Source: Takakia lepidozioides (Eukaryota > Plantae > Bryophyta). From it: a DNA stretch of 64,000 bases. The DNA is taken from contig CM060732.1 of assembly GCA_030704615.1 (NCBI GenBank), forward strand, positions 51,026,001 to 51,090,000, read 5' to 3'. The notes beneath the pieces were generated by a model. It did no database searches and was not told where the DNA came from. It saw nothing but the letters and a program-made list of their open reading frames with translations. Numbering within the stretch: the stretch's first letter is position 1; each line of letters begins with the position of its first letter. The position numbers were made by a program, and so were the translations under genes. Below, piece after piece: positions 7,366 through 46,800 of the stretch.

Positions 7366-10300
7366 TCACTTCTTCAAGAGCTTCAAGACCGACTCATACA
7401 CAAGAAAAGTGATGGATGATGAAGGTACAACCCTCAAGAGGTTGGGTACGATGCCTTTATACAACCCACGCATGCCTTCATACCTGTCATCCACAGATCA
7501 CCCCCTTATACTCCAAATGATCTAAATGTTTAGACCTTGCTTCATGCTTTACATCAAACTTGAATGGTGTGATCCTCAGAGGGGGATCTAGGAGTCCTCC
7601 CTAGGCTCCTGGGGTCTCAGGTAAGGGGTAGAATTACAGAAGAGGTTGTACAGTTCCAACTACTCTGGGAAAGAAGTGACTAGATGTTGCGAGTTCACCA
7701 CACCATGCAATATGAATCCACCGGCTACTAAAGCTAGCTGTGTACACAATGCAGCGACCACACTTCAAGTCATACCTTGAAAGTCTTCTAACCAGTGCTT
7801 TGAAAAGGCTCTACAACCCGAACGGAAGCACAGATTGGAAAATAAGAGCCGAGTTCCAGGAAGCTGCAAAGGTTTACCTTAGGATGTCTCTGAAGGCCTG
7901 CCTGCTGTCCAGGTACTTCACCACTCCAGATTCATCTGGTCGTTGCTGTGCATGTTTTAGTTCACCCGTCAGAGCTTTTACATCCACCCAATACATAGAC
8001 ACAAGACCATACATCTTTAGTTTCTTAAGTGGTACTGTTCTGTTCTTGAGAAGAGACCAACATACATGGGGAAGAATGCTAGCTTTCAAACTGACAATTT
8101 TTCCTCAAGGTAACTTGGTGATGGTTGAGCACTACCTGAAGGCGAGCTCGTATGACCTGCAACAAGGAATCCACATGTACACAAGTTGAGGAATTAGATT
8201 TGAATAATGTGTACACTATTAAAGACATGACTAAATGAGATGACTGTGGGACTGCAATGATCAAGGTGATTATAAAGAATGTGCATCCTCAAGGGGTTAT
8301 TTCCAGTGCATTCAAAACGTTCTGTCGGCTGTCAACTTCTTTGCTGTCCCGTCACTGCGCTTGAGCAGGACAGGACATTGCTCTGCCCCCTACTTTATAC
8401 CAGTAATAAAGGAAGAATACAATTGGGGCACTGTTGTGTGATTGAAGATGTGCAGCTCATCAAGTCTCGCTCAAGACATAGTTCCACTCTTTCCACCTAA
8501 TCATTGTGATTGCTAAGGTCCTAGTCTCCTTTCTGGAAGAAAACCTCGGATGGTGTAGTGAGTAAATAGTATACCTGATATGGATAGGTGAGGAAGATAG
8601 CAAAAAGCTTGGATGATGCGCCTAAAAGAGCAATGTCAAGAGGTGTCTGAGACACAGTACATCACAGAATATGTGCGATTAGAAAGTCTATTACTCGCAT
8701 ACAAGTATTAGCTTGTGATTTTGGGGGTCATCCAACATGCACCTATGTGGCTTTGAATTTTGAAAGGTGGCCTTGTGTCCTAACCATGGCATCTGTTGGA
8801 TGCTGTTGTCTTTTACTCTGACCTTGACAACCTCCTTGATTTCAGTGTTTATGCTCCCCAGGTGGAGAGGCAATTGGTTAGAGAAAGAAAGAGAAAAAAC
8901 GTTTAATACGTCAATGGGGGCACATGAACTACAATCTAACCAGAATACTGCATCAAAAGACCCCAACTTTACTCTGTCTCAGAGAGAAGAGATGCCCTGC
9001 AAGGTTCAGCATTCTTCGCTTGTCAAGGTTTTCTGATGTAGGTTTTCTTTATAAAATTTGATCCCGGGTATTTCTTCCTTCCTTGCAAAGGAACATCCAG
9101 TGAATAAAACACAGAAAACAGAGAAAGAGAATTAAAAGCTGTATAAGAATATTGAAAAGGGCAAAGAGGAGCAAAACAGGTGGGGGCTTACATACCAAAA
9201 GATCTTCACCACTCTTAGACTTTTGTTGGTCAGCAGCCCTTTTCGAGTGCAAGGCAATAAGCAGTTTTCGGCCTTCTTCATATGCCATGAACTGTAGTGC
9301 TCCATGAGATACCTGCACTTCCTAGGCTTCAATCCATCGATCTACCTGTTTTGGAGCACATTCTTTCTATCTGGTAACTAGTTACTGAGCATCCATGTTC
9401 AAGTGCCAGGAGTAAGAGAGGTGGTCATCTTCAGACTGACCAGAGGAATGAAAAGAAAAGCTTATGTAATATGTACCAGACAAGGCTAAAGACACTCACA
9501 AGGATAAGGCCCGGGCCCAGTCCTTTGTAAAGACCACGCCAACCCTCCTCTCTGAGAATGCTTCGCAAAGCATCTGCATTTCAGCTTGTTCCCTTAGTTT
9601 CGAATGGACAGCAGGTCAAGAAAATAGATTTAATGTAGGATAGAATGGTACTCATAGCTCCCATGACTGTTCGCAGCACATGATAATATCCGCATCTTGA
9701 CCAGTAAGACCACCCATATAATTGTGAGATTATAAGTACTGACGCACCTGGAATCTCTGAAAATATAAATGATATTCTGAAGGTATGAGCAATGGAATAT
9801 ACCTGCAAAGCCCATGTAAGGTCGACCGCCATGGCCAGGGGCCTGAAGCTGTAACCGTGTTTTCACAACCCACACTGGATTCGTAAGCACGCACACCTGA
9901 CCCCACCCCACAACCACATATTTGAGTGCAACTTTACCCTGTTTCATACATGACTTTATTTGGCAAAACAGGTTGAAGCCAACTTACAGTAAAAGGCACA
10001 GGCCTGAAGAGCCACTTACCAAAGTGCACAGCCACACAATCAAAGCCTACATGGCTGCCACAAACAGGATGATGACTGTTGATCTAGAATCAACACACTT
10101 ACAAGCTTGGCCTTTTGGAACTGCCAGAGAAAAGACCTACAGACACGTGGGTATTCTCTATACAAACAAGATGAGTTGGTCTTCCAAACATCTTGCTTCC
10201 TGGAAGACAAACAGAAACTGCTCCTCCCTTAGGTAGGACAACACTGGGGCCACAGGTTCAAGAGCAAAGGGAAAGCAGCACACAATTGTCCCAGCCTCTG

Positions 10301-11984
10301 CAGCTGAAAGGAGGTGGTGAGCGGGTCCTAATCCTCTCCCAAGTCGGTGCTGATGCCACTCTTTTATATTGCTGTAACTGCACCAAAAACATTAAGGCAG
10401 TAAATATGCCTACCTCTGATCTGAAAGATCACTGTGAACGGTCACAATGTGGTCCCTCAACAAATCCTCCAATTGGAAATTAGATTTTGTTCCACTTAAG
10501 CTTGGAAGATAGAGAGCTTCAACTCATGTTGCAGCACATAGATGTATAGAATTCAAAACCATCGAGTGGATCCACTGTAATAAATTAACACAGAAGAGAA
10601 ATTCTTGGAAACCCAAGCAAGACAGCGCCCAACACCAGAAAAGGGGAAAGTTGGAAGGAAATTGTTGCGACTGCCCTGTTGTCCCTCCCACTGATAGGAA
10701 AATCTTATCTGCAAGTAATATAAACGAGGCTTGAAGCATAATGTACTCACAAGAAGAAGTAAAGGCCCCATGAAAGGCCCGATCCCAAGATAGCTGGAAA
10801 AAGGCCTGCATACAACCCTCTCAAACCCTGCCATCATCACCACCCAAAGACACTGTTGTAAATTGGAACTGTCTGAAAGCAACCCAATCCAGTCTGGCAT
10901 GCTTTCCCTTCAGGTTGAAGATTGCTAACATCCAGCTCCTACCAGCCAGCACAACTTGAAACTTTGAAAGACTGCGGCCAAAAATCATCCCACTTTGGCT
11001 CTCTGTCCAGCATTGGAAACACAGCTAGAGTGGAGGTACCTCTGTACGGGCTATTGTGACCAAAGCATGTGCTGTGTTCTCATACTTGGGAATGGTTGAA
11101 TGGCGCCCATCATGCACTACACATACAACATTGGCTGCAAGTGAAAACCGAGCAAGCAGTACACATGAAACTTCTATAAATGGGACAGTTTGGAAGTCAG
11201 TAGATTCTTCATACGCTGCACATACGTCGTCCGTTGCAAATGAAAATTCAAGCATGCATGCATATGAAAGTACTAACTATGTCACAATATAGAAGCCAGT
11301 AAACTATTTCCAGAGCCTGAGGGACGAAACAGAGCTCTAGTCGTAACTAGAGCTCTCTGTGAAAGCTCTGATGGACTATGCCAGATACAAACGAGAAGTA
11401 GGGGGAACTTCGATAGACAGTAACATTCTGCATTGATGCTGAGTTTCTGAACAATGGCATTCGCAGGGTAACGCATGAAGGCGGAGCATTGGTGTCCAAA
11501 GAGGTTCCAGACTCTGTAGGTATAATTCCTGCATAAGATGTCGACCTAACTCGTCGTCTCCCTACACTGACCCAATAACATGGCACATCGGAGACTTGCT
11601 CCGCTAAACAAAAGTGTGCTTTGACACTGAAGCTGCCTCGAAATTGAAAGCGGAAGAAGAGCAAAAGGCGGGTAGATTGCATACCCATTCCAATGAGCTT
11701 TCTCATTTTACCGTACGATGTTGATTGATATTCCTGAGAGCCTCAGGCATCACTGTGCCTTCAAGCACCCAACCAGGAGAATTGGAATTGCACAGACTCA
11801 GGTTTCTAAACGTGCAAAGTCTAGTGCAACCGTCCAATGTGCAGGGAGGAAGCATGGCACCTTGAAAGCGGGTGCGAACAATGTCGAGAGGATGGAGGGA
11901 GACGACGGTGGCGACGCCCGCCACTGCACCAGCTATTGCATCCCCCCACCTCCAATGCTCCCACTTGAACTGCATGCTCTGCAT
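7366..11984 (-). CDS. FOLT1: Folate transporter 1 (mitochondrial carrier family, SLC25A32-like), 11 exons
   Basis: Exons (minus): 11984-11861, 11116-11040, 10827-10751, 10377-10284, 9896-9803, 9573-9500, 9312-9196, 8646-8575, 8156-8136, 7945-7878, 7483-7366. All are GT-AG and phase-compatible. Three carrier signatures ([33 protein letters not shown]). Collinear with Arabidopsis FOLT1 as recalled. Confidence 0.93.
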
Positions 11985-26282: not shown

Positions 26283-26298
26283 GTCCTTTAGGGGTTAA
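26283..26298 (-). mobile_element. piggyBac-type terminus (reverse orientation)
   Basis: GTCCTTTAGGGG-TTAA; its reverse complement TTAA-CCCCTAAAGGAC resembles the termini at 31042 and 32244. Confidence 0.55.
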
Positions 26299-31041: not shown

Positions 31042-32243
31042 TTAACCCCTCAAGGACGAGCCTGTTTTTGGTGGGGCCCGTCCAAAACCAGACATACCCT
31101 CACGGATGAGGGTGTATCTCCCATTTGACAAACATCCGAGGGGATGAACCGTTCCAAAGTCATCCTACCTACTTCATGCACCTGCAGTAAGAATTTCAGG
31201 AGATTTGACCATCTAAAGTGGAAGATTATAACAAAAGTTCTAGGCCTTTTTTTTTTTTTGATATATTTTCAACATGAAAATTTCGTTTGACCAAGCAGAT
31301 TGCCAACCTGATTTTTCATTGATACAGCCTACCCAGATTCAGATTATATGGCACCCACAGCAAAGCCTCCCAAAATTCCAGAGCCAAATTCCAAAAATGC
31401 ATAATGGTTGCTTTGTATGGGAAAACAGTGGGGTCAAAATGCCAATTTCTCTCATGGGAAAAACACATCCCCCCAAATGTGGGGCAATTTGTGAGGTAAT
31501 CCAAATTCCTCTGCTCATGTTGTTGTTTGCCTACCTACCGAGTTACCCTGAAAAAAATTTCCACATTCTAAGCTGTTTGTAGGCAAAGATTGCCAAAAAA
31601 CCGAATCCCTACTTGAATCCCAGCTCCGCCCAAGAATTGCCGGAGCCCGGTGGACATTTCCGGCCAAAAAATCCGGCCACGTCATCACAAACCAAGCAAG
31701 TCACGAGGCCTCCACCTTGCCTTTCAGCGTTCTCCCTCCATGACCTGCCAACGCCCAAACACTTCCCACAGCCACACCAGGAAGCATACTCAAAAACACG
31801 AGCTATGCGTTGAAGCTATGCGTTAATCCTAACTGATGACCGAGAATGCTAAGGAAATAATCCACACCGTTCTTAGGGTTAGAATTTCAATTCTGTCACA
31901 TATGATCAATCTTGGTGCAATTTTGAGCGCAGGAGTGATCGGATAGCCAGAGCATTTTACATGGAGGAAAACTCCACAGCCATCCGCAGCGCACAACCTG
32001 TAGACCCTAGATGTGAAAGACGATACTCTGTGACGCTCCTTGTCTCTGAGTAGCAAAATCCGCTTGCACCCACATGATGCAACCAAAAGTGAGCGGAAGC
32101 CTGGCACAATCGTGGCCCCAAAACCAAAGATATACTTAGGCACCTGGAGGAAGGGGAAAAAGGGTCGTACAAGGAGGAAAAGAAAAAAGAAAAGTGCAGT
32201 ACTTATGTAGCCTACAATCAGTTTTTTTGAAGTAAAAGGGCAC
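31042..32243 (+). mobile_element. piggyBac-type left end and subterminal region (element A, truncated or interrupted)
   Basis: TTAA-CCCCTCAAGGACGAG at 31042 is identical to the terminus at 32244. No matching right end seen. Confidence 0.6.
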
Positions 32244-33904
32244 TTAACCCCTCAAGGACGAGGCGACCCGTATCGGGTCGGGTCAAAATTTTGATTGGAT
32301 GATAAATGTGCAGATCATGTCGGATGAAAACGATTCCTGAACAAAAAGTGTAGCCAATAAATATTTACGGCCCCCTGTGTTGATTGCACCCTAAAAAATC
32401 TAATCCCCCGCCGTCAGGATTTTTTGGAATCTGGAGGGGTACCCAAAATCCTGTGGTTTTGGGCCCGCCAGCAGGTTGACTGGCAGACGTGGCAGGCAGG
32501 ATTGGGCGGGGGGTGGGCATTTGCCGACAACGGGTGACAACGGGGGGCTGCATGTCCGCCCGTGCGGACAGCGGCGGACTCCCGGCACGCGCAAAACGCC
32601 AGGCACGTGGCCCAATTAGGTGGCAGCTGGCGGGGGCGGGAGCTTCTCTCTCGCTCTATGCGTTTTGCATATCGTGTCCTGAGTGCTACGATTGTCTCCT
32701 TGTAATCGAGCTTTTGCTTCGTTCTTTCTTGGTTTTTGCTTCGCTTTGGCTTTGCTGCGTCAATCTTATTTTGCCTAGGATTGCTTGGTTTCATTTTTTT
32801 GGGAGCTCATGTGCCGCTGTTGAGGAGCAGGGGTGGCTGCGCGTCTATTCGGTTTGTTGGGATCGTCCTTGACTTTGCCTTTACAGCGGCTCCTTCTCTT
32901 TACACCTGCTCATTACCTTCGTGTTGGGGCGCATGCGCAGCGACGACGCTTCATAGGTATTGCGCAGCCATCTAATCACTTATGCATTTGCATTTGCTTG
33001 ATATTGTCTGCCTGCTTTGCTTGATTTGTTTGTGCATTGAATGTTTGTGGTTTGTGGGTGGCAGGAATTCTATGGCGTCCACTAGAAGCATTCGTGTCTT
33101 TTCCGAATCGATTGCATGTCCAAAACCACTGAGGGAACAACTTTGAGATGTTTGTTACTACTGCACAGTCGTAACGGATAAATTCACATTTCTAAATAGC
33201 GGCATATGAAGTCCGCACAATATTCGCGGCGATTTAATTCAATTAGGTAAGGTTTTTTTTTTTAAAACAACAATTACAAGTGGTTTTAAGCACTAGAGAA
33301 CGACTCTTAACAACTAGGCATTCATTGCACACCCTATTCAAAAATGGAATTTTTATAAGTGCTCCACATGGCTCATGACGTGGAATATTTTAATGTATTT
33401 TAGGGCTTATGTGGCTCGTAGAGATTGTTCTAATCGTCGGATGTAAAATGATCTAAGGGTGGAAGAGTAACTTTGTCCTTTGCCTGTATCTGTCTAAGTG
33501 TTGGGAGAGGGATGGAGGCTTGAGAGAGAGACGAACAAGTGATGCGAGAAGGACGAAGACCAAATCGAGGCCCATGTCCTGTTGTTGCAAGCGTTTATGG
33601 CGTCAAGGGCGCATTATGTGCAAATGTTGGGCTCTTGGCTCCCCTTTGTACCATGATTTGATATTCTTCCTGATGATCACAAGGTTCTTGGGGGAATCAG
33701 CTTGTCTTAGCAACCCATTTTAATCTCTGCCCGCTCAGCTGCACCGTGGTGTTCTTACGAACCAATCCCACATTACCTGACTAGAGATACAAGCAGCACG
33801 CACAAGAGGTCTTCTTGGGTTCATGGTCAGTCGCAATGGATCATGACACAAGATAGAGGACAATGTGGTGAGGGCACCTTCTTCTTCGAGCTATTTCAGC
33901 CTGT

Positions 33905-34725
33905 TTTGCCGAGATGTAGTGTTGTGGAGTGCGATGCTTGCAGGGTATGCACAGCAAGGACGTGGGATGGAGGCTTTGGAGACCTATGAAGTTGCGAAGG
34001 GAGAGTTTGATAACAAGGCTGAACAAGGATGTTGTCTCAAGGAACACGTTGAATCTCGCAAGATATGGCCAGCATGTGTGCGGATGAGGGCATTGGAGAC
34101 ATATGAGCAAATGTTGAGAAGAGGTGCAGCCTGACCGGGTCACGTTCATTTGTGTTTGCAATGCATGTGCAAACCTGGCAGCCCTAGAGACTTGGTAAAG
34201 GGCAAAGAGGTCCATCGTGACATTGTCAAAGCTGGAACTGTACCAGATGTAACAATACCTCGTCGACATGTATGCCAAACGTGGGAGCATTCCCTTGTGG
34301 ACAATGAGTGTTTAACAATATGGCTGAGCGAAATGTGGTGTGGTGGAACGTGATGATCGCAAGACATGCACAACATGGGCGGGGATTGCGGGTTTTGGAG
34401 ACCTATGAGCAAATGATGTGGGTCTAGGGGATGAAGCCCGAGCACATTACGTTTGTTTGTGTTTGTAGTGCATGTGCGAGCCTGTTGGAGAAGGGCAAAG
34501 AGGTCCATGGTTGCATCGTCAAAGCTGGAATTGTGGTAGATGTCATTCTGAACATGAATACCCTTCTAGATAGGGAGTGTTCAACAATATGGCTGAGCGA
34601 AATGTGGTGTCGTGGAAAGTGATGATCGCAGGACATGCACAACAGGGGCGGGGATTGCAGGTTTTGGAGACCTATGAGCAGTTGATGTGGGAGGGGGTGA
34701 AGTCCAACCACATTACGTTCAGAGA
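33905..34725 (+). pseudogene. PLS-class PPR repeat fragments (CACTA cargo)
   Basis: RDVVLWSAMLAGYAQQGRGMEALETYE, KGKEVHRDIVKAG, ITFVCVCSACASLLEKGKEVHGCIVKAG and RNVVSWKVMIAGHAQQGRG lie in shifting frames. Confidence 0.9.
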
Positions 34726-34899
34726 GTTCAAATGCCTCTCCACCATGACCTTGCTTAGCTAACCATGCCTTGCTGATGTTGTTGTCTTGCACTTGAGCTG
34801 TTTTTGGACACTGGCTGGAACATCCACAAGGCGGCTCTGCTCGAGAGAGAAATCAGCTTGAATGCAGGGGCAGATTTTGAGATCACAATCACCACTCAG

Positions 34900-37120
34900 A
34901 ACGTTGTTCTTTGCACCGGCATGGCATATCAACATGCATATCAGCCCAAACTCATTACTCCGTGAGCCTTCCACTGCCGGAGTGTGCCCATTCAAGCCAG
35001 ATCTTCGAAACGCAGGGATGGAACGGGGTTTTGAAACCAGCATTGCCTAACTGGATACCCAATTCAGCTCCGCATCTTGGTCCATTAATCTGCTGCACAT
35101 TGTGAAGTTTTATGCCCGTTCACCGCAAGTTGAAGAAGGAGTATTCTTAAAACACGGGTACTCATAATCTGAAAATGGCTCCAGCTTATGTTGTTTGAGT
35201 GCGAATATGAGTGTGGTTGGCTTGGCAGCTTTACATCTGGTCCATCCCACTCGATATGATGAGCAGGTTCAGCTTGACTTCTCTCACACAAAAGACGCTG
35301 CCAATATGGGGTTTGCTGCCCTAGATGACTTCCCGTCGTTGTTCTGGGCTGCAACATACAATTAATCTGGCCCATGGCAAGGGGCCTTGCCTTCCACCAA
35401 TCATCTGTAAGTCCTGTGAAACTGTTTTTGTGGCAATTTGTAAGCAGTGGGCAGCGATGGTGGGCTATTGTAGGATTTGATGAACTCAATGCCGTGTACT
35501 GACAGCAACCCCTTATCTCTTATGCAAGCATTCAACAAGCCAAGTTGACTGCAAAGTATATTTAGCCCCCCACGTTTCTAGTTGCCTAATGTTCTTCATC
35601 TCCTGGGCAGAGCATTTTCCAGGGTCTCCATCTGTGATGACACACTATCTTCTCATGTGGTTCAGCTTCTGGTCTTGCTCTTGTTTGCACCACCCCAATG
35701 AAGGGCAGTTCCCACCTGCTTGATTCTCTCTATATGGTTGTCTTGGGTCTTGGCAGGGTTTCCCACAACCGCCTTTTCTTTTCAGACTGCCAGTCATCAG
35801 CCTCGTTCTCCAATGCTTCACTTTCTTCCCCAGTGAAGTGCTCTCCTCTTTTATGCTTCAACGTCCCTGTAGGTGTCTTTTCCTTCATCTCCCGTGGTGC
35901 TTTCGAATGAATGAGCACTGATTTACATTTGTTGGCAACACTTACGGTGTCCCTTTCCTTGCATGCCACTGCAGGCCCGCATTGACTTTCTTGGCAGGGA
36001 AGTCTCATCCTTCTCCCTCATTTTCTGGCTCTGTTGGTGCCCCACTCACCATGCTATCATAGCTGCACTTATTTTGTGGTGTTGCGCCAGCCAAGGGCGA
36101 TCTTTCACTGGTCCAATTGTTGGCAACAGCTGATTGGAGTCTTCTTGGCAGAGTCTCCCACGAGCTCCCATCAATTTCAGGCATCAGGTTTTCTACCCTG
36201 CCCTTCCACTTTTCATAAGCGAGGTGCATGTCTTCCTCCCTTTCACTCTTCAGCCTCTCAGGCAGATTTTTCTTCATGCGATTGCTGCTCCCATACTTCC
36301 AGTCCTTGTTTAATTTTCTCCAGCCATCACCCTCAGATTTGACAAGGTATTGCTGCCCTTCCTTGTGTCTTTCCTCACTCCCAGCTGCCGGTTTTATCCC
36401 AGATTCACCTCTCATCCTTGCCTGGGGTTTTGCTTGCCAAACAACCGTTGTGTGGGGAACTTCAACGAAAGGCAACATCTCATTCTCAGCTCCTGTCTTT
36501 GTACCTCTTTGCAGCAGTCCAGCCTCGGGTGCCTCACTTTCTGATTGCTGGGTTGCATTCTTCGCCGCCAACCTTTGACAAGAAAACGTGCTCCATCTTC
36601 CTCATCTCCTACTGGTTCCCTTGATGCTTCACCTCGTATGTCTTCCTCCTCATGTTTTAGCAGCAGCTCCTATGCTTGAATTGCTACTTTTCCTCGTAGT
36701 TGATCTTGTGCTTTCCTTTTTCTCCGTAGCCTAATCAACAGTTTTGTCTTGGCAGCTCCCTTGCCATGAGTGCCTTGTCTCACTGCATCTCCCTTGGCTG
36801 CCCACCATCCGTGGAATCTTTCTTCCACTATTCTGACCCTCGTTGGCATGCACTTTGCTGCGATGCCCCACATGTATTTGTTGCTCCCTTTAATCATCAA
36901 CATAGTGCTCCAGAGCCAGTTCCTCATTGTTGACCAGTTGACCTTCTCAGCCCTTGGACCCCATTTTCCCTTCTCCCATGTTGCCTCATCTTTCTGCTTC
37001 ATCATTTGCTTTACTTGCACAATGTTGCTTCTTCCCTACAGCTCATCATATGTTGTGGCTCTTTCCCATGTTGCACTCACTCCCATCATACGTTGTGCAG
37101 TTGATAAGACTGAGATGAGT
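34900..37120 (-). mobile_element. Degenerate gag/ORF1-like retroelement fragment nested in the CACTA cargo
   Basis: K/E-rich broken ORFs (36005-36571, 35730-36008) followed by eroded zinc-knuckle-like motifs (GHKTSQC ~35095; GLNGHTP ~34985). Confidence 0.3.
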
Positions 37121-37399
37121 TGATGCAGGATAGGGGGAGGGCTTGCTGGTGTATGTTGTCCGATAGGCCCCATGCATAGAGTCAAAGCTGGAAGTCAGCC
37201 TTGCAAGGACCCAAGTGAGAGAAGTCTGGTGGGGGTAGCATCTTGGGGGATGGCAGTTAGGGCAATGTGTGTCTAGGGCAATATATGTCATAGCAGCGGG
37301 TGATGTGCTGCCAATTTTGAGGATAGAGACAGCTTGTAAGCTGTAGATTTGTATAAGTGGTTTCTTCTTACACATATTGCTCCTAGTTTGCCACACCAG

Positions 37400-37538
37400 T
37401 TGTTTGCGTTTGTAGTGCATGTGCGAGCCTGCTGGGGAAGGGCAAAGAGGTCCATGGTTGCATCGTCAAAGCTGGAATTGTGGCAGATGTCATTCTGAAC
37501 AATACCCTTGTGGACAGGGAGTGTTCAACAATATGGTT
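37400..37538 (+). pseudogene. Second copy of a PPR L-S fragment
   Basis: Highly similar to 34452-34596. Confidence 0.85.
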
Positions 37539-37564
37539 GAGGGAAGGATAGAGTGTAATGACTA

Positions 37565-38650
37565 CTAATGAAGGCACCTTCTTCAATTTCACCTTGTTTT
37601 CCCCTCTTATCAGAATCGCCCCTAATTATTCATGTCTGAATTCTGCAAGTTAGCTGGTTGAGTGAAGCTTTGATAGTTTGGAGTGACTTTGACATGATTC
37701 TGCCAATGTGACAACAGGAAAGTATCAGAAACAGGTAACACAGACGAGGAGAAGTTGTGGAATGAATATTTTTCTGACCCCAGTCAATGGTGGGACAATT
37801 GAGGCAAGAAGGTGAATGTTTGTTGGATTATAGAGAGTAGCAGATGCAATTGAGCGTAGGAACTAGTGTGATAAGTTGAGTTGGGTGCTTCCTAGAACAA
37901 GTCTAGGCTGTCATCGTCAACTGCTAGCAACAAGGCAAGGTTGTATGCATGATTCGTGTGAGGCATGGATAGTTGAAGGAGCAAGGATAGAGTGTGGGTG
38001 CAGATTCACCCAAGAGGGCTAGACTTCAAGCTCCAGATTAACTATGAAGCTATAAGAAACCTGCATGGGTAGATGGTCAACTGGCAGCAACGGCACAATT
38101 GATAAAATCAGACATTGTTAATGAAGGCATCTTCTTCAGCACATTTCACCCTGTTTTTCCCTCTTATTAGAATCGGTCCAAAATTTCCATGTTGAATTAT
38201 GCAAGTTAACTGGTTGAGTGAATCTAGTTTGGAGTGACTTTGACATGATACTGCTATGTGACAACAGGAAAGTATCAAAAAACAAGTAACAGACATGAGG
38301 AGAAGCTGTGGAATGAATATTTTTCTGCCCCCAGTCAATGATGGGACAACCGAGGCAAAAAGGTGAATGCCTGCTACATTTCAGAGAGTAGCAGACGCAA
38401 TTGAGCATAGGAACTAGTGTGATAAGCTGAGTTGGGTGTTTCCTAGAACAAATGTAGGTTGTCATTGTCAGCTACTAGCAGCAAGGCAAGGATGGATGCA
38501 TGATTTGTGCAGGGGCATGGATAGCTGAAGAAGCAGGGATAGAGTGTGGTCCAGATTCATCCTAGAGGGCCAAATTTCAAGCACAAGATTTACCTATGAT
38601 TCCCTGTGGATCAATAACTACAAGAAACCTCCATGGGTAGATGGTCTATT
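37565..38650 (+). pseudogene. Two tandem ~550-bp units, each encoding a split OSB-type PDF motif (CACTA cargo)
   Basis: EEKLWNEYFSDPSQWWDN*GKK, then a GT..AG intron, then IHPRGLDFK/IHPRGPNFKHK...SLWINNYKKPPWVDG. Contains stops and frameshifts. Units are about 37565-38117 and 38118-38650. Confidence 0.75.
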
Positions 38651-39480
38651 CCGTGGAACTCACTGAAGTCTTGCATTATGAGGATCAAAACTGCTTGACT
38701 TGCACGAGGCCTTGACCCTTAGGCAATCCGCTGCTTTTTTACTTTGTGTTTTTCATTTTGTCCCATAAGCTCTTTGAGCTTTCCGCAGATGTAATAAAGT
38801 ACCATTTTGTTTCATTTCATTCATTTTCATTTCATTTTGTTTCATGGCATGTCTTTCATCGTTTGTGCATTTCTAATGCATGATTAGTTCTCTTGTATGG
38901 CATTACTAGTCGACTCACTACAAACACCAAAACTCCAAAGCATGAATCACTATGAATGATTGTTCAAGTAATTTCGAGCACTTCATGTAAAGTAGTAAAG
39001 CAGTGGTTGCGCCAACTTCCGCAGTCACAATTGTCACTGGGCATGTAGCACTGCAAGTTATGTGGTCTACTACCACGTGGCGCCCCGGGCCCGTGGCCAT
39101 GTGGCAGCAGTGGTGCTCGTCGTGGCGCCGCCACGTCGGCATCCACATCGTCGTCCACGTCCGCGTCCATGTGTCACCGCGCTTCAGTGAGTCAGTCCAC
39201 TCATCCTGAGGGAAAAGTCAAAGTCAGCCCAAAAGGTCAGACACACGAGCGGCCCGCCTGGTTACGCCACGTGGTTCTTCAGCATTAATCGCATTAATTG
39301 CTGAGCAGTTGTTCGCGCGTTTGCGTCCTTTACCACTCCAATCATTGGATGTCCAACCCAACTACCACGTCTGTTGTAACTAGTCGTTTGTAACTTCCAG
39401 ACGATCCCAGTTTTTTGACTTTTACGACTCAAAATGAGTCGTTACCCCAGTGGCAAATGACACGAATGCTTCTAGTGGTC

Positions 39481-40258
39481 TAAACGTAAGGGATCTGAGC
39501 TGCTTGAGCCCCCACCCGAGCATGCAGCTGCGGCAGAGGTTATAAGGGTGTGGGTGCAGGAAAAGCAGCATTGCACTGTGGAGCAATGCAATGTAATTCT
39601 AGGTTGTCTTTGTCCTGAGTTTCAGACCTCTTTGCCTCCACCGCCTACTGCCAAACGCTGGCCGCGCCATCCTTCTCCTCATAACTTTCGATTTCTCAGG
39701 CGGAGGCAAGTGGCTTCTATTCTTGGTTGGAGAGAGGGGAAATACTATGCGATTAGGATGTATATGCCTAAGAAGCCATGCAAGTGGGGCATCAAGGTGT
39801 GGGCGTTGGCTAACTCGGAGACCAGCTATGTGTATGATTTTCAGGTATACTGTGGGAAAAATGCAGGGGGGCCTAATGGTGAGAGGCTGAAAAGTGGGAA
39901 GGGTGAAGGCTAGTATGATGTGGTGTGTGGGCTTGCTAGTGGACTCCATGGTTTGGGGCATGTAATTGTCACTGACAATTACTTCACTTTTGTTCAGCTT
40001 TTAATTGACTTGGCCAAGCTTGGTACATGGGCCACTGGCACAGTTTGTGTGAACAGAAAAGGCCTCCCTCCCTCCTTGCTATCCAAGAAAAAATCTAAGA
40101 CTGCCAAGCAAGGCCAGTCCTGGTACAAGATGCATGTTTTCAGGGAACTTGCGCCCGTGTTGTGCTGGGACAAAAAGGGGGTATTCATGTTGTCATCTGT
40201 AACTAGACCAACATGCAGGCCTTCTTCTCTTATTACCGTGTCATGGTTTTGTTTGTGA
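39481..40258 (+). pseudogene. piggyBac (PGBD-like, DDE_Tnp_1_7) transposase, disrupted
   Basis: MYMPKKPCKWGIKVWALANSETSYVYDFQVYCGK, VIVTDNYFT, WATGTVCVNRKGLP and WDKKGVFMLSS are hallmark piggyBac blocks. In-frame TAG at 39911. The first catalytic Asp block is missing. Confidence 0.92.
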
Positions 40259-40739
40259 TTAGTTAGAAATAGTTATTTCTAACTAATTATGACATTATAC
40301 ATTTATATTTGTATTTTGTTGGCATTTGGACTTCATTTGGTTCCATGGGCCAAGTGAGGTGGCGAATCTCACTTGGGACGTGGAGAGGTTATCTCAACGT
40401 GAGACGTAGGCATGCTCGTCTTCTTCTAGTCGAGCCTTCCGAGGCCTCTCTCGTCGCTATAGCTCTAGTACTTGAGATGGAGAGTGGGTGAGGTCTGTAT
40501 GGTGGAGTCCTTTAGCAAATGTGCCATTGGCATGACTTATATAACGTGATAGAGTGGTCTCTCATCTTTTCACCATTTCCGTATCATTGTGGCGTGGCTT
40601 TCTAGGACTATATGCTAGGAAGTGTGGTTGGACAACAATGTATGTTGTGGCACGATGCTTAGGTGCACGACAACTGTGAGACGCTTTGTGGGACAACAGA
40701 GAGTCTTGGTGCCATCAAGTCAGTGGTCAAGAGAGAGGC

Positions 40740-42159
40740 AAAGAAGATGAAACCATCAGGCTTTTAGCTTTGTTAGGACCAAGTGAAGCATGACCGCATG
40801 AAGATGATGGGTGGTTTGCAGCAGATTTTGCTTTAGTACATCGGATTTACGAAGAGACTACTGACGAACAATATTGGTTGTCTTGTGTCAACTTGCTAAA
40901 AGAGGCTGAAGAGGGGCCATATCTTTGGGGTCATCCAAAAAATGAAAGAATAGTAGTCTTTTCCAAACAAATCCTGTATTCTATACCCTATGCAACCCAC
41001 GGTCCTTAATTGCAGCTTTCAAGAACAAACTTGAGGAGATAACAAATCGTATGGAAAACAATGACAAATTGTTGCTTCTCATCTTTGCACATGGAGAGCA
41101 GGAGGGATCAACAGGGATACTAGTTGGAGAGGAAGTGAATGGTGAACTTGGAATTTTAACAGCTGAGGAGGTAAATACCTTATTGAAACCTCTATCAAGT
41201 CATCAGCCAGTAACATTGATAACATCTGCATGCTATTCGGGAGAATGGCCCATTGAGGGTTCAATTGGGACAAGAGTTGCTGCAACAGGCACTGATGATG
41301 AATCTCTATCATTCCCAGTATCTAACTTTGGAAATTGTAGGGGAGATACTCTTGGGGAGGGTTGTGGTATGAGTTGAGCAGGCTTGGGGTTCCAAGAATT
41401 GGGAAGGAGATCCCTGAGGGGGACAAAATCAGAACCTGGACAGAGAAAGTGAAGCAGCGTTTGCAAGATATGTTTATTTTCCATCCTGTACCTACAATTA
41501 GTGTGCCAAATGAAAGTATTTGGGAGAAGCATGCACGTTATGTTTTGTGCCTTGAGATGGATTCTAATTTGACATCGAGTTGTGAGGTTGTTCCATGTAA
41601 CCCTACCCCAGACTCAGTTAGAGATGTGGATGTACAATTTACAAGGGGTAGTTCAACATTGAGGGCCTTGAACAAGCCTCTTGCAGATGTTTTACCTATT
41701 ATGATGCAATATTTTTCTTCATGCAACCCAGGCTTGCCCACTGCAGCTAGTTGCATCGGGGTTTTTAGGTTGGCAAGGTTGTATGATGAGGGTTCAGCAT
41801 CAAAGGATTTGAAGAAATTGCATTTTCTGTTGAGATACATAATTTTGGAGGACTGGAGAGCTGGAAGGATTCTAAATTTTTTTAGGATCCCAAGATTGTG
41901 CTCTATCTACAACTTTAAGCAGTGGGAGCACAAGTAGAAGGAGATGTCACCATATCTTCGAGCAGTAAATGCAGTGATGCCATTCGATGACCCCCCCAAA
42001 ATGCATCCCCGTACTTACAGATATACAAAGCCTACTGTGTATGTGGGTTGGACTGCCTGGATGGCAAAGGTGGATGTAGAGTGGTTAAAAGCAAACTTGC
42101 TTATATATGTTGGTGGCCGGAAATTAGCTTCAGGTGAAGGAGGGACAAGTGGATGTTGA
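40740..42159 (+). pseudogene. Caspase/legumain-fold (clan CD-like) peptidase homologue, intronless, decayed
   Basis: LLLLIFAHG (His 41090) and VTLITSACYSG (Cys 41231) form a dyad; DGWFAADF lies upstream. Lesions: TGA 40791, frameshifts ~41000 and ~41355, TAG 41935. Confidence 0.75.
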
Positions 42160-43882
42160 CAAGGATGTATGCCGCATATTGACACCACCTATTTGCATGA
42201 GGATTTCAGAATGAAATCTCCAAACTTTTGTCAGGGCTTAGACCGACTCAGTTAGGTTCATGTAAACTTTTGTATCCATAATTGTACGATGGATCCATGA
42301 GGAAATTCATGTTTAGCCCACTTGTGCAGCTGAGGCAGCTAATCACTTTTTTTTGGTATCAAAAAACATGTTGTTCGCCTGGGTTTGATGATCTGTTAAT
42401 TGTGCACGATGGGTTTGTTACCACTTGGCTAACTAACTCCTCTTCAGCTGATGAGTGCACTCCCAACCGCTCCCCTGTGGAGTTGTTAATCTTGTCTGCT
42501 CACCTGGGCTGGTCAGAAATCATGTTGTTCGCGCAATTCATAGTTTCACTATTGTAGGGTTTCCGGCACCTCAAATACATCATGAGGTTCTGTTCCTTGA
42601 TGTTCTGTATGCTTTTTGAACCTCCTGTAAGTGGCTGTTTCACTGTTGCAAAAAGCTGGTAGCAGGAAGTCAAGCATGGGGCAAGGTGAAACGATGGGGG
42701 CAGACATAAAATCTGGTTGGGGGCAGCATAGTACTGTCACAATTCATGATGTCCCAGGATGCTTGGTAATGTCCCAAACATCTTCTACTTCTCGCAATCA
42801 TCATGAGTGAAGTAGGGCTGTGGAGTAGGCTACTGAAAGTCCCGAACCCTCTGTTTTGTGTGACCTGCTCTGCTTTCTTCTGCACCAACTATTTTACAGC
42901 TGGATAACATCACTTGATGTCACCTCGATTTTTTAGCAGCAGTGTTCTTTGAGCATTCAGACGAATTGACAGGAATTGACAGGAATTGACATCACTTGTG
43001 CTGCTGGGGCGTGACACTGCGTTTCTGGTTGCAGGAGCTGCTTTGTCTTCAGTGGCGGGCATGACTGACGGAGTACCTTGTCTCCAGTTATTTCTGTACA
43101 AACTCCTGACCAAGCCTTTTAAGGGTGAGTTAACAGACAGGAACTAGAGAGGGCAAGGCAGACAGCGTGAGGAAGACAGTGCCTAAACAACCCAGGGCCA
43201 GCAATAAGCCCCACATAAAACCCAGTTTTATAGTTTCGCAATTGTTATTGAGTGAGAACATTTTCATTTCACCATAGCTTATTAGGTTAAATGTAGAATA
43301 TGCTATTCTACTTGTGTGACCTTCCTCACATGCTACCCAGCCGCCTCCCTGCTAATAATGAAGTCAGTCAAGTGGTCTCCCAGTCATCAGCAACAATTTT
43401 GATGCAACCTCACCTATGTAAACTAATTGGAGTCTATCGTCTACATTTCAGGCCTGCATACATTGACAGGGCATAAATCTTGTTTCAGTCATCTCATACC
43501 CATGTTCCATTCCTTGAAACAACACATCCTCCAAAAATATGGCTGCCACCACCCTGGTCATTGTGATGGCATGCCCAGCTGCCAAGCCCTCTTCCTCTCT
43601 TTCCCAACAAGCTGGGCCTCTTGCAAGTCATTCCAATAGGGATTGGATGACTCATGATGCATATCCTTGGAAATGAGGTGCGCCGGCATAAATGTTAATG
43701 TGTGAACTGCCTACTTTCGGATATTGAGGGTAGAGTGTACTATGGCCAGATATATGGACAAGTCCAGTGAAGTCACAAGCCAGTGGAGTCTTCTTTCACG
43801 TGACTCTACAGACCTCACTTTGTCAGACTATTTGCAATGCAAGGCATGCATTGACAAGTTACTTTAACCAGTAATATTGCCC

Positions 43883-46800
43883 TCATTTGACACAATTATG
43901 CAGTTCCCCAATACCTTCAATCTTGATACGAATTGTGTCTCCTGGCTTTAGATGGCGTGGTGGACTGAAGCCTGACCCAACCCCTGCCCACATGCGCAAG
44001 TCCTTATTTGTCAGCAAACACATCTTGTTGAACATCAAGAAGACACTCCCTGCAGCACTACTTGAACAACAAATCTACATCTAAAATATTCACATGTTGA
44101 CGTGGCTGAACTGCAATGGCTATTCAAACAGAGGAAGGAAGGTTTCTTGCCATCGTTTGAAACAAGCTGCAAAACACAACTTCCAGTGCCCTTCCACAGA
44201 AACCCACTAGGGGGGAAATAAAAACATTTTCCTGACTAAACGTCACTCTTCAAGGAACAGACACAGATATCTGAATTCGTGTCTTTGCCTATTGGCAATG
44301 ATGATGACCAATATAACTAGTAAACAGTGAAAGCATATCATGTAACTTACCAGAGGGAGTGCCGGTGGCCACAATATCTCCAGGCTGCAGTGTAATACCA
44401 GCAGAAATGGTTTCTATCAACTCCGCAATTGGAAAGATCATTTGAGATGTACATCCATCCTGCAAACAAACAGCGCTCTTTAGTGTATCAAGTGAAGTAC
44501 CAAGCTTCATCCAACAACTTTTACATCCTCTCTGCTGGCAAAGACGAAACTACAGTGAATTAAGGTGCCTCTTCACCAGGGCTACTGCCTCCCATTTGGG
44601 AAGTCGACACCTCTGCTAGGATTACTGAAGAGAACTTAAGTTGCTAGTCCAACCTGGCGCAGCTCGTCATTGATCCAGCATTGGATTGAAACATTCTGGC
44701 CATCAATTTCAGAAGCAGGCACAATCCACGGGCCCATCGGACAGAAGGTGTCACAGCTTTTGCCCAAGAACCACTGCAGCTCAATCATTTCACTGATCAG
44801 CTTGTAAATGATGCAAAATTACCATTGACACATTTTGCCATTATCATAACCTCAAATAAGCCAGTATTTAGCTTGCTACAGGGAACCAGCTCTCAAGGCA
44901 CCTCACCCCTTTATGTGCCCAGATACCATCACCCGTTTCGGGATCTTGCCTTTAAGGAAAATTAATGGAGTCTTTAACAGAATGTCCCCCCTCCCTTACT
45001 AAACCCAAACCCTGATTGTGAGAGAGGTTTAGGTACAGAGTGTTAAGAGAAATGACTTTGACCTACCTGTTGGTGACGCTTTTGCACATCCCTTGCTGTT
45101 ACATCATTGAGAATGGTATACCTGGATCATTCACCTCAGGTTCAGCTTATCACCGGACTTGATCAACATTATGTTGTCCATAAAATTTCCAAAATCGTCA
45201 TGACAAAACTACAACTACTACTTTGTTGGGGTTCACTGTACTAACCCAAAGACATGACCCAAAGCATCTTCCTTCCGTATACCTCGCCCCGGTTTGCCAA
45301 TAATTACTGCTAGCTCTGCAGCACACCAAATGCAGACGGTATCCTTAAAAGTCTCTCTCTAGTAAACACAAGAACAACTGAAAGTCAAAAACTGCTGTGC
45401 TCAACAGGCCATCAACTGCTTCAAGGCAGAATAAAACGGTGCACCAAGGCCAGGCTATCTACCTCAAATCCGATTTTGATAGAAAAGAGCATCTGCATAT
45501 GGTGAACGAGTACGTTGTGGCTAATCCAAACTAAGCCTTTCCTTACTAGGAATCACGACCCTCTTCACGCCTATCTGAAGCAGCACAGCAAGATAACTTC
45601 TAATTGTACTGAGACACTAAAATTCCAAGAAACACCTACACCTGCAGATTTGGGGGCCTTACCTGCTTCATAGTCAACAGACTCCGACCAACCATGTGGA
45701 TATTGGATAGCAGCCCCAGGGCCAACAACAGATTGTGGTGCCTTTGTAAAGACAATAGGGTGCTGCCATGTTCCAAACTTAAGGCATTGGTTCCAAACTC
45801 TAGGTATCACTTGGCATCACTTCGAAGCTAAGAACATTAATTTTGCAACGGAAGACTTGCAACAGCCAACAAAAGCAACAAGAGCCATAGAAAATTGAAA
45901 ACCTTGGGGGCCTCTGGTGCAGTTATGCCAGGGGCACTTTTCCATGTGTCAACTTCCTTGACGTGGTCAAGATAGTTCTTTCCAATGCACATTATTGCTC
46001 CAGAGGGCCTGGGTATCGGAGCCTGCAGCTGAACTTCACTCAATCTTGTTCCTTTCCCCTGAACCTGTATGCTGCCATCATCCATTCAACTGTTCAATAT
46101 AGCGTATTGAATCTTTCTCCTTCCTATCCTGCATATTACACACAGAAAAAAATCTGTTAATCCCTTTCCAAATTGAGTTCATTCATCACTTGAACTGACC
46201 TGCAGAAGCACCCTCTCTGTACCTGCAGAACATATCTTACATTCCCTCTTTATGCTTTATTTAATATACACGAACAACAACATGGAGGAAAATGTACCTA
46301 TCCTTAAGCAAGTCCCAATGTTGGATAACGCCCACCATGTCATTTACTTCAAAGGGTGTGATGCCCACTGGAAACTTCAACACATCCTGCAAACACCTGT
46401 TCCTCTATGTTGAGTCCACATCACATTACCAATTTAAACCTGCTGACCTCTCCTCAAGTGCCTCAGAAACCCCAATAACAATGACTACGATGTGCGCTTA
46501 GTTCTTCCAAACAGTATTCCGGGGCATTTTTCCAGGCCAAATCAGTATTTCACTCTTTCGAGAAGAAGGGATGAGGTTTGCAGAGACTTACCAAAAAGCA
46601 TCTCCACAAACAATACCCACAACGTTTTCTCCTTTCTCTCTCCGAATTGTAGCCAGCTTCAAGATATGATCTGCATCATGATGTACATAAACCAAAATGA
46701 AGTTCTCAGTATAGACATTATGAAGCAAAGTCCTGGGAAACCTGGTAGAATATCAAAGACATGGAATGAATACAATAGAGCCTTTGAAACCAACTGCTTC

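Follow-up and report, generated by a model that had tools for sequence, protein, structure and literature searches.

Gene remnant and transposon relics in the window

The window, by which we mean the whole 64-kb stretch of DNA analyzed here, carries a single copy of a decayed protein-coding gene, located on the + strand behind the remains of a piggyBac transposase. Three-frame translation and co-linear tblastn alignment to relatives from other assemblies define the extent of this gene, its conserved blocks and its lesions, which are listed below.

40692-42159, + strand: decayed coding sequence of a legumain-like (clan CD) plus helical-domain protein, pseudogene (three-frame translation; co-linear tblastn to L001, L016, L014, and L018)
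40761-40967, + strand: N-terminal blocks LLALLGP, DDGWFAADF, QYWLSCV, YLWGHPK, and RIVVFSK, in frame 0, with 46/69 residues identical to L018 exon 1
40791-40793, + strand: first lesion, in-frame TGA (translation; alignment to an intact relative)
40968-40978, + strand: first frameshift, with VVFSK before it in frame 0 and FYTLC behind it in frame 2 (HSP boundaries against L018 exon 1)
41090-41092, + strand: putative catalytic His, still encoded within LLLLIFA-H-G (translation)
41231-41233, + strand: putative catalytic Cys, still encoded within VTLITSA-C-YSG (translation)
41344-41347, + strand: second frameshift, from frame 2 to frame 1, at about 41345, between CRG and YSWGGLWYELSRLG (translation; alignment)
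41347-42156, + strand: C-terminal half with blocks WYELSRLG, MFIFHPVPTISV, EDWRAGRILNFFRIPRLCSIYNF, and YRYTKPTVYV, predicted to be all-helical in a relative
41935-41937, + strand: fourth lesion, in-frame TAG (translation; alignment to an intact relative)

The decayed reading frame comprises about 489 codons, from a start at about 40692, placed by homology to the relatives, to a TGA at 42157-42159. It is recovered from stop-free pieces in frame 0 (40680-40790 and 40794-41006), frame 2 (40994-41374), and frame 1 (41341-41934 and 41938-42156), through which the reading path runs in frame 0 from 40692 to 40967, in frame 2 to about 41344, and in frame 1 to 42156. These pieces match co-linear sequences of other assemblies by tblastn, with E values of 1e-17 to 1e-65, and the ORF is therefore not a product of chance. 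In the modelled fold described below, strand 1, helix 1, and strand 2 are the counterparts of its N-terminal blocks. The lesions amount to two in-frame stops and two frameshifts, and the start ATG of the relatives L001 and L016 is missing, all of which bears out an earlier assignment of this stretch as a pseudogene. The same preliminary description had reported a decayed ORF with a clan CD-type dyad and several sequence blocks; we found all of these on the + strand, in a coding sequence that begins slightly upstream of the position first given (40692 versus 40740).

Two further observations concern the flanks of the gene. About 800 bp downstream, the unit GACAGGAATT occurs three times in tandem (42968-42995). 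What looked like a Cys-rich motif at 40640-40700 was discounted, since in another frame this stretch is homologous to the N terminus of the protease-like gene.

Upstream of the pseudogene, the window contains the remains of DNA transposons, as follows.

26285-26298, opposite orientation: piggyBac-type end of another element, about 5 kb upstream of the two ends that follow
31042-31061, same orientation as the next end: piggyBac-type end, nearly identical to the one at 32244 and in direct orientation (pattern scan)
32244-32263, + strand: piggyBac-type left terminal sequence TTAACCCCTCAAGGACGAGG with TTAA (TTAA followed by CCCCTCAAGGACGAGG)
33079-39478, no strand assigned: CACTA element bounded by 24-nt terminal inverted repeats that are 96% complementary (repeat-pair analysis)
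39548-39913 and 39920-40258, + strand: piggyBac transposase, two ORF fragments, outside the gene (Pfam DDE_Tnp_1_7)

The two transposase fragments cover positions 144-273 only of the 349-position DDE_Tnp_1_7 profile. The last of them ends about 430 bp before the pseudogene on the same strand, close to the earlier estimate of about 500 bp. When each ORF piece in 40296-40747 was searched with Pfam, no transposase signal emerged beyond 40258 and up to 40747, and mapping of the transposase end by phmmer against the PDB, with the transposase pieces as queries, was uninformative. The three piggyBac-type ends in the window follow the pattern TTAA plus CCCCT[C/A]AAGGAC. Those at 31042 and 32244 lie 1.2 kb apart and have in common the terminus of about 20 nt only, and the three ends together appear to represent several nested or truncated elements of one terminal inverted repeat (TIR) type.

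A matching right end was sought by TTAA-anchored end pairing and then by whole-window pattern scans allowing up to 3 mismatches. Right TIRs of the local type (…GTCCTTNAGGGG-TTAA) are absent from the window downstream of the ORF, and no TTAA-adjacent pair downstream of 40200, out to 52000, reached 13/20 matches or 7 leading matches. The ORF thus has the left end at 32244 on one side, and no TTAA-flanked inverted partner was found on the other. Since the transposase is represented by an internal fragment and a right end was not found, we regard the transposase as an internal relic; the data define no element that would contain the ORF. With the piggyBac left end on one side of it and the transposase fragments on the other, the CACTA element splits the piggyBac relic. 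It contains repeated units of about 269 nt and about 551 nt (33900-34700 and 37400-38650); a suspected second CACTA end at 44275 was rejected on inspection.

Relatives of the pseudogene and their plant-like setting

Relatives were collected with each half of the protein. An exhaustive HMMER search of 1.84 billion representatives with a profile of the C-terminal half, run without length limit, returned nine proteins, all of them short ORF fragments (54-310 aa) without names from ENA, Logan, and JGI assemblies. Word-based searches with the N-terminal half, among candidates of 140-446 aa, added further fragments (relatives P0010-P0018) and one 421-aa protein, P0012. At the DNA level, the decayed copies L001, L015, L016, and L017 all come from one ENA assembly, L014 and L006-L013 come from JGI metagenomes, and L020 comes from NCBI assembly GCA_030155505.1. 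Scans of metagenome contigs with four conserved motifs of the N-terminal half, and of viral contigs and bacterial and archaeal genomes, gave pattern matches only, none of them related. A literature search on piggyBac in bryophytes and on clan CD in bryophytes found nothing relevant.

The copies differ in their state of decay. L016 (9254-10816) reads in a single frame, free of frameshifts, with about seven stops. Several of these replace Trp, Gln, or Arg codons of the intact relative (for instance, YLWG became YL*G and WYEL became *YKL), and the local CpG observed/expected ratio is 0.38; such a pattern is as expected of C-to-T and G-to-A transitions in methylated DNA. In L014, too, the frame is free of shifts; its roughly 570 codons contain one stop, and Asn takes the place of the His. 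L001 is frameshifted and has lost the Cys. L017 (9071-11434) is rearranged, its N-terminal half lying on the + strand between inverted pieces of the C-terminal half on the - strand (9071-9504 and 11000-11434); its DNA shares 88-92% identity with the JGI metagenome contig L014.

One member of the family appears to be intact. At L018 (1003-3175), which corresponds to L019 (320-2490) and, for exon 1 only, to L020, both exons are open and are separated by a 682-nt intron with canonical GT-AG boundaries, in phase 1, within a Gly/Ser-rich linker. L018 and L020 differ at 7 of 996 exon positions. The 90% cluster of L018 holds twelve further near-identical members, 11/12 of which have a complete, uninterrupted first exon, P0020 being a partial ORF of 255 aa. 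The pyrimidine-rich region upstream of the gene varies in length within this cluster, and therefore a 5' intron or UTR is probably included. Terminal repeats, sought around the L018 intron as a test of a transposon-insertion origin, were not found. Neither a Pfam domain nor a name in any source is attached to genes of this type. The intact family protein would be about 500-570 aa long, with a clan CD domain at its N terminus and, behind it, about 230 aa of helical C-terminal domain. By eye, the N termini of L014 and L016 are acidic and devoid of a hydrophobic stretch; no signal peptide is apparent in them, and the protein may be cytosolic.

Neighboring genes and base composition indicate where these relatives reside. 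The intact gene has an Rpb8 gene as a neighbor at a distance of 5 kb, and this Rpb8 scores 182 bits with subunit 8 of plant Pol II/IV/V, about 159 bits with the animal proteins, and 87-104 bits with the fungal ones. A ClpP fragment adjoining the L001/L002 copy finds its best match, by a small margin, in 7eko_A, which we take to belong to the Clp complex in the chloroplast of Chlamydomonas, a green alga. Moreover, all loci have 35-46% G+C and a plant-like CpG depletion, with neither a RIP signature nor a RIP-like TpA excess. On the basis of Rpb8, ClpP, and base composition, all sequence-detectable homologues therefore reside in plant-like nuclear DNA, and their kingdom is most simply read as plant. 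The proposal made in the preliminary description, that the gene is possibly of fungal origin and arrived by transfer, does not agree with this picture: the nearest sequence homologues found, with the N-terminal half searched among proteins of 140-446 aa, are all plant-like, including the intact intron-bearing gene beside a plant-type Rpb8, and the best matches are plant nuclear sequences.

In a tree built from query-anchored alignments, with stops coded as X and with the two L018 exons searched separately and their aligned columns concatenated for the tree only, the family falls into three clades: A (L006 and L014/L017), B (L016 and L018/L020), and C (the window copy and L001/L015). The window copy is thus a member of one of three old clades, joining L001/L015 with a support of 98/97. 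The shortest branch is that of the intact L018. Protein identity between clades and lineages is 33-59%, and DNA similarity among copies of one assembly is confined to the coding sequence or undetectable. Furthermore, tblastx comparison of all loci with the window flanks revealed no similarity outside the coding sequence. The deep divergence and the lack of common flanks argue against a shared larger element and give no sign of recent amplification.

Linkage to piggyBac was assessed at five loci of other genomes with about 5-10 kb of flank on at least one side (L001, L015, L016, L017, and L019). Precomputed Pfam matches to DDE_Tnp_1_7 and tblastn with window fragments detected no piggyBac transposase at any of them; at these five loci the family is unlinked to piggyBac. 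Unlinked copies and plant-type best homologues are both outcomes that the preliminary description had named as refuting its proposal. Other transposon genes lie upstream of two clade C copies: a pogo-type transposase (HTH_psq plus DDE_1) at L015:1404-2892, 7 kb upstream of its copy, and a weakly Ulp1-protease-like ORF at L001:3685-4398, 5 kb upstream of its copy, with a Pfam E value of 0.0027, below the curated cut-off. Neither is common to both loci.

Predicted fold and protease class

The N-terminal half of the window copy retains the two residues expected of a clan CD dyad. Both LLLLIFA-HG and VTLITSA-C are found in the window, L016, L017, and L018, with the His preceding the Cys. The His column is also kept in L001, where the following Gly has become Arg; VTLITSAC is invariant in alignment A5, the Cys position being occupied by Tyr in L001.

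We modelled the N-terminal half of the intact relative P0010 with AlphaFold2 and the family alignment A2, whose ten rows are mostly fragments from five loci; the resulting model is of low confidence (mean pLDDT 55, pTM 0.62). It proposes the order strand, helix, strand, then a strand followed by the His, a hairpin, a helix, and a strand followed by the Cys. The dyad residues would directly follow the hydrophobic strands 145-151 (His) and 195-200 (Cys). A Foldseek search of the PDB with this model returned CED-3 as the top match, together with caspase-1 and -11, PIGK, legumain, metacaspases, and the caspase-like domain of raptor. VIA-align favored PIGK (8imy_K; Z 12.6, rmsd 3.3 Å over 175 residues), followed by legumains (Z about 11.5), metacaspase 4 (11.5), and caspases (about 9.9). 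The top matches of both methods are almost all clan CD proteins, as the preliminary description had anticipated from the dyad. Feature searches of the ESM Atlas also pointed to Peptidase_C13 clusters (0.89-0.90), which we treat as leads only.

Sequence profiles, by comparison, do not recognize the family. PF01650 (C13) matched neither the window pieces, searched to an E value of 1, nor the intact proteins P0012, P0010, and P0004, searched to 10; PF00656 (C14) likewise matched neither the window pieces nor the intact proteins, and no Pfam model recognizes any member. A sequence-profile search of the PDB with the alignment of the N-terminal half gave noise only, with no legumain among the hits, and a model of the helical C-terminal half found no fold match. 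Taken together, the structural matches and the failed profiles place the family, as far as a predicted model allows, within clan CD, nearest to C13 in shape and outside both the C13 and C14 profiles. The absence of the QACRG and DSCHSG contexts, already remarked on in the first reading of this DNA, also held: the window has SACYSG and FAHGE.

By analogy with the established chemistry of clan CD, the intact protein would have cysteine peptidase or transpeptidase activity, in which the scissile bond would be attacked by the Cys that follows strand 4, with the His that follows strand 3 as the general base. The helical tail may serve as a regulatory or prodomain-like module. With its start codon lost and its frame broken by two stops and two frameshifts, the window copy could not carry out this proposed catalysis.

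Origin of the window copy and comparison with known systems

We favor the interpretation, to which we assign a probability of about 0.62, that the window copy is the dead remnant of a member of a nuclear clan CD gene family of plants, coincidentally located in transposon debris. Its site about 430 bp behind a piggyBac fragment would then result from the build-up of debris in a transposon-rich region, and we consider carriage by a transposon less likely than such accumulation. A random pseudogene would not usually lie so close to a transposase and on the same strand, which speaks against coincidence. A second point against this reading is a lead from the predicted model, whose best shape match in the ESM Atlas is an Ascomycota cluster, as discussed below.

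The absence of an intron in the window copy would also fit a different route to the same place. A processed pseudogene, reverse-transcribed from the spliced mRNA of an intron-bearing parent, could have landed beside the piggyBac relic by chance. In favor of such retroposition, the only intact gene found (L018/L019) has the GT-AG intron and probably another one at its 5' end, the window copy is contiguous across the L018 intron site (41626-41640), and conservation covers exactly the coding sequence. However, the L018 intron is likewise missing from all the other copies, whichever of the three clades they belong to. One of these, L014, with its one stop in about 570 codons, was probably a functional intronless gene until recently; since the other copies, L014 included, are all intronless, retroposition is no more likely than intron gain in the L018 lineage. 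Neither a poly(A) tract nor a target-site duplication is visible in 42160-42400, which weighs little, age being sufficient to erase both. We view a retroposed origin as unlikely, while according it a substantial share of the possibilities, and leave the choice between DNA duplication and retroposition undecided.

A second alternative looks beyond plants. The best ESM Atlas shape match of the N-terminal half model is an unannotated 597-aa cluster whose 196 members are all eukaryotic, 152/196 of them from Ascomycota. It aligns over 209 residues with a TM score of 0.63 by query, spanning model residues 3-253, whereas bacterial C13/C14 clusters reached TM scores of 0.49-0.53 over 149-177 residues. 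The plant family and this family of about 600 aa might then be one, related through an old fungus-plant transfer that has nothing to do with the piggyBac of the window. The top rank of the cluster, its similar length, and its agreement with the ascomycete family to which the preliminary description compared the block pattern all point in this direction. On the other hand, no fungal protein was retrieved among the 1.84 billion representatives by the HMMER search with the C-terminal half, the motif scans of metagenome contigs gave no relatives, and the shape match comes from a low-confidence model and carries no E value. The searches with the N-terminal half, confined to 140-446 aa, could not have seen a fungal family of about 600 aa. 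The suggestion that the block pattern fits ascomycete proteins found no counterpart in sequence but did find a candidate in shape. Because the plant family comprises three deep clades and has at least one intron, any transfer would have been old. Overall, a shared fungal and plant ancestry of this kind seems rather doubtful to us. Its fullest form, in which the plant proteins and the Ascomycota proteins constitute one undescribed C13-like clan CD family with its own helical C-terminal domain, patchily present in fungi and bryophyte-grade plants through ancient transfer, then split into three plant clades, with introns gained in one lineage and most copies now decaying, is equally tentative and, in our estimation, improbable.

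Carriage of the ORF within the piggyBac, as a second gene or as a host gene captured in Pack fashion that decayed with the element, is very unlikely: the same-strand position behind the transposase, the TTAA-flanked left end at 32244, and the sharing with relatives of the whole coding sequence and nothing more, as for a captured or retro-copied gene, are set against the missing right inverted end downstream, a transposase homology restricted to profile positions 144-273 and ending 430 bp before the ORF, the absence of a transposase from all of the other long-flank loci (0/5), and copies that are single and deeply diverged, none nearly identical to another, with no sign of amplification. The two-gene piggyBac, transposase plus protease, of the preliminary description is not supported, on the same grounds.

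Returning to the relic copy of a plant gene family, the feature in the window, being a dead gene, is of no consequence to the plant. A piggyBac carrying both a transposase and a protease would, if true, have represented a new kind of two-gene transposon and an inter-kingdom vector, a proposal that is unsupported by our data. What the window does lead to is a protease-like family, with a predicted fold of the legumain/GPI8 type, that is found in some plant genomes and is recognized by no Pfam model. Besides many decayed paralogues, this family includes one apparently functional, intron-bearing member, and a counterpart in ascomycetes is possible. It is a small addition to the catalogue of plant clan CD proteins and a possible case for studying the death of a gene family or an old exchange between fungi and plants.

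Several known systems resemble parts of this picture. Gene-carrying DNA transposons, such as Pack-MULE, Pack-CACTA, and piggyBacs with accessory ORFs, also present a host-like ORF beside a same-strand transposase; unlike these, the window ORF has no pair of terminal repeats, no copies in the same arrangement, and no amplification. The Ascomycota cluster of about 597 aa, compared by shape alone, covers nearly the whole N-terminal half model, is of similar length, and likewise lacks a Pfam domain, but the profile of the plant C-terminal half matched no fungal protein. Family C14 (caspases, metacaspases, and orthocaspases; PF00656) shares the clan CD fold and the order of the dyad residues, yet its profile does not match, and its QACRG or DSCHSG contexts contrast with the SACYSG and FAHGE of the present family.

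The closest comparison is with C13 (legumain or vacuolar processing enzyme, and GPI8/PIGK; PF01650). The family differs from it in giving no PF01650 match even at an E value of 10, in the lack of an apparent signal peptide in L014 and L016, in a C-terminal domain of about 230 aa that bears no convincing match to the legumain LSAM domain, and in that the S1-pocket residues of legumain are not evident. It nevertheless has PIGK and legumain as its best structural neighbors, and in both families a His-Gly and then an Ala-Cys each follow a hydrophobic strand, and a helical C-terminal extension comes behind the protease domain. The N-terminal block of the family, of the form hhhhhG ... GW ... AD ... 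H..Y, presumably resembles the start of legumain as well.
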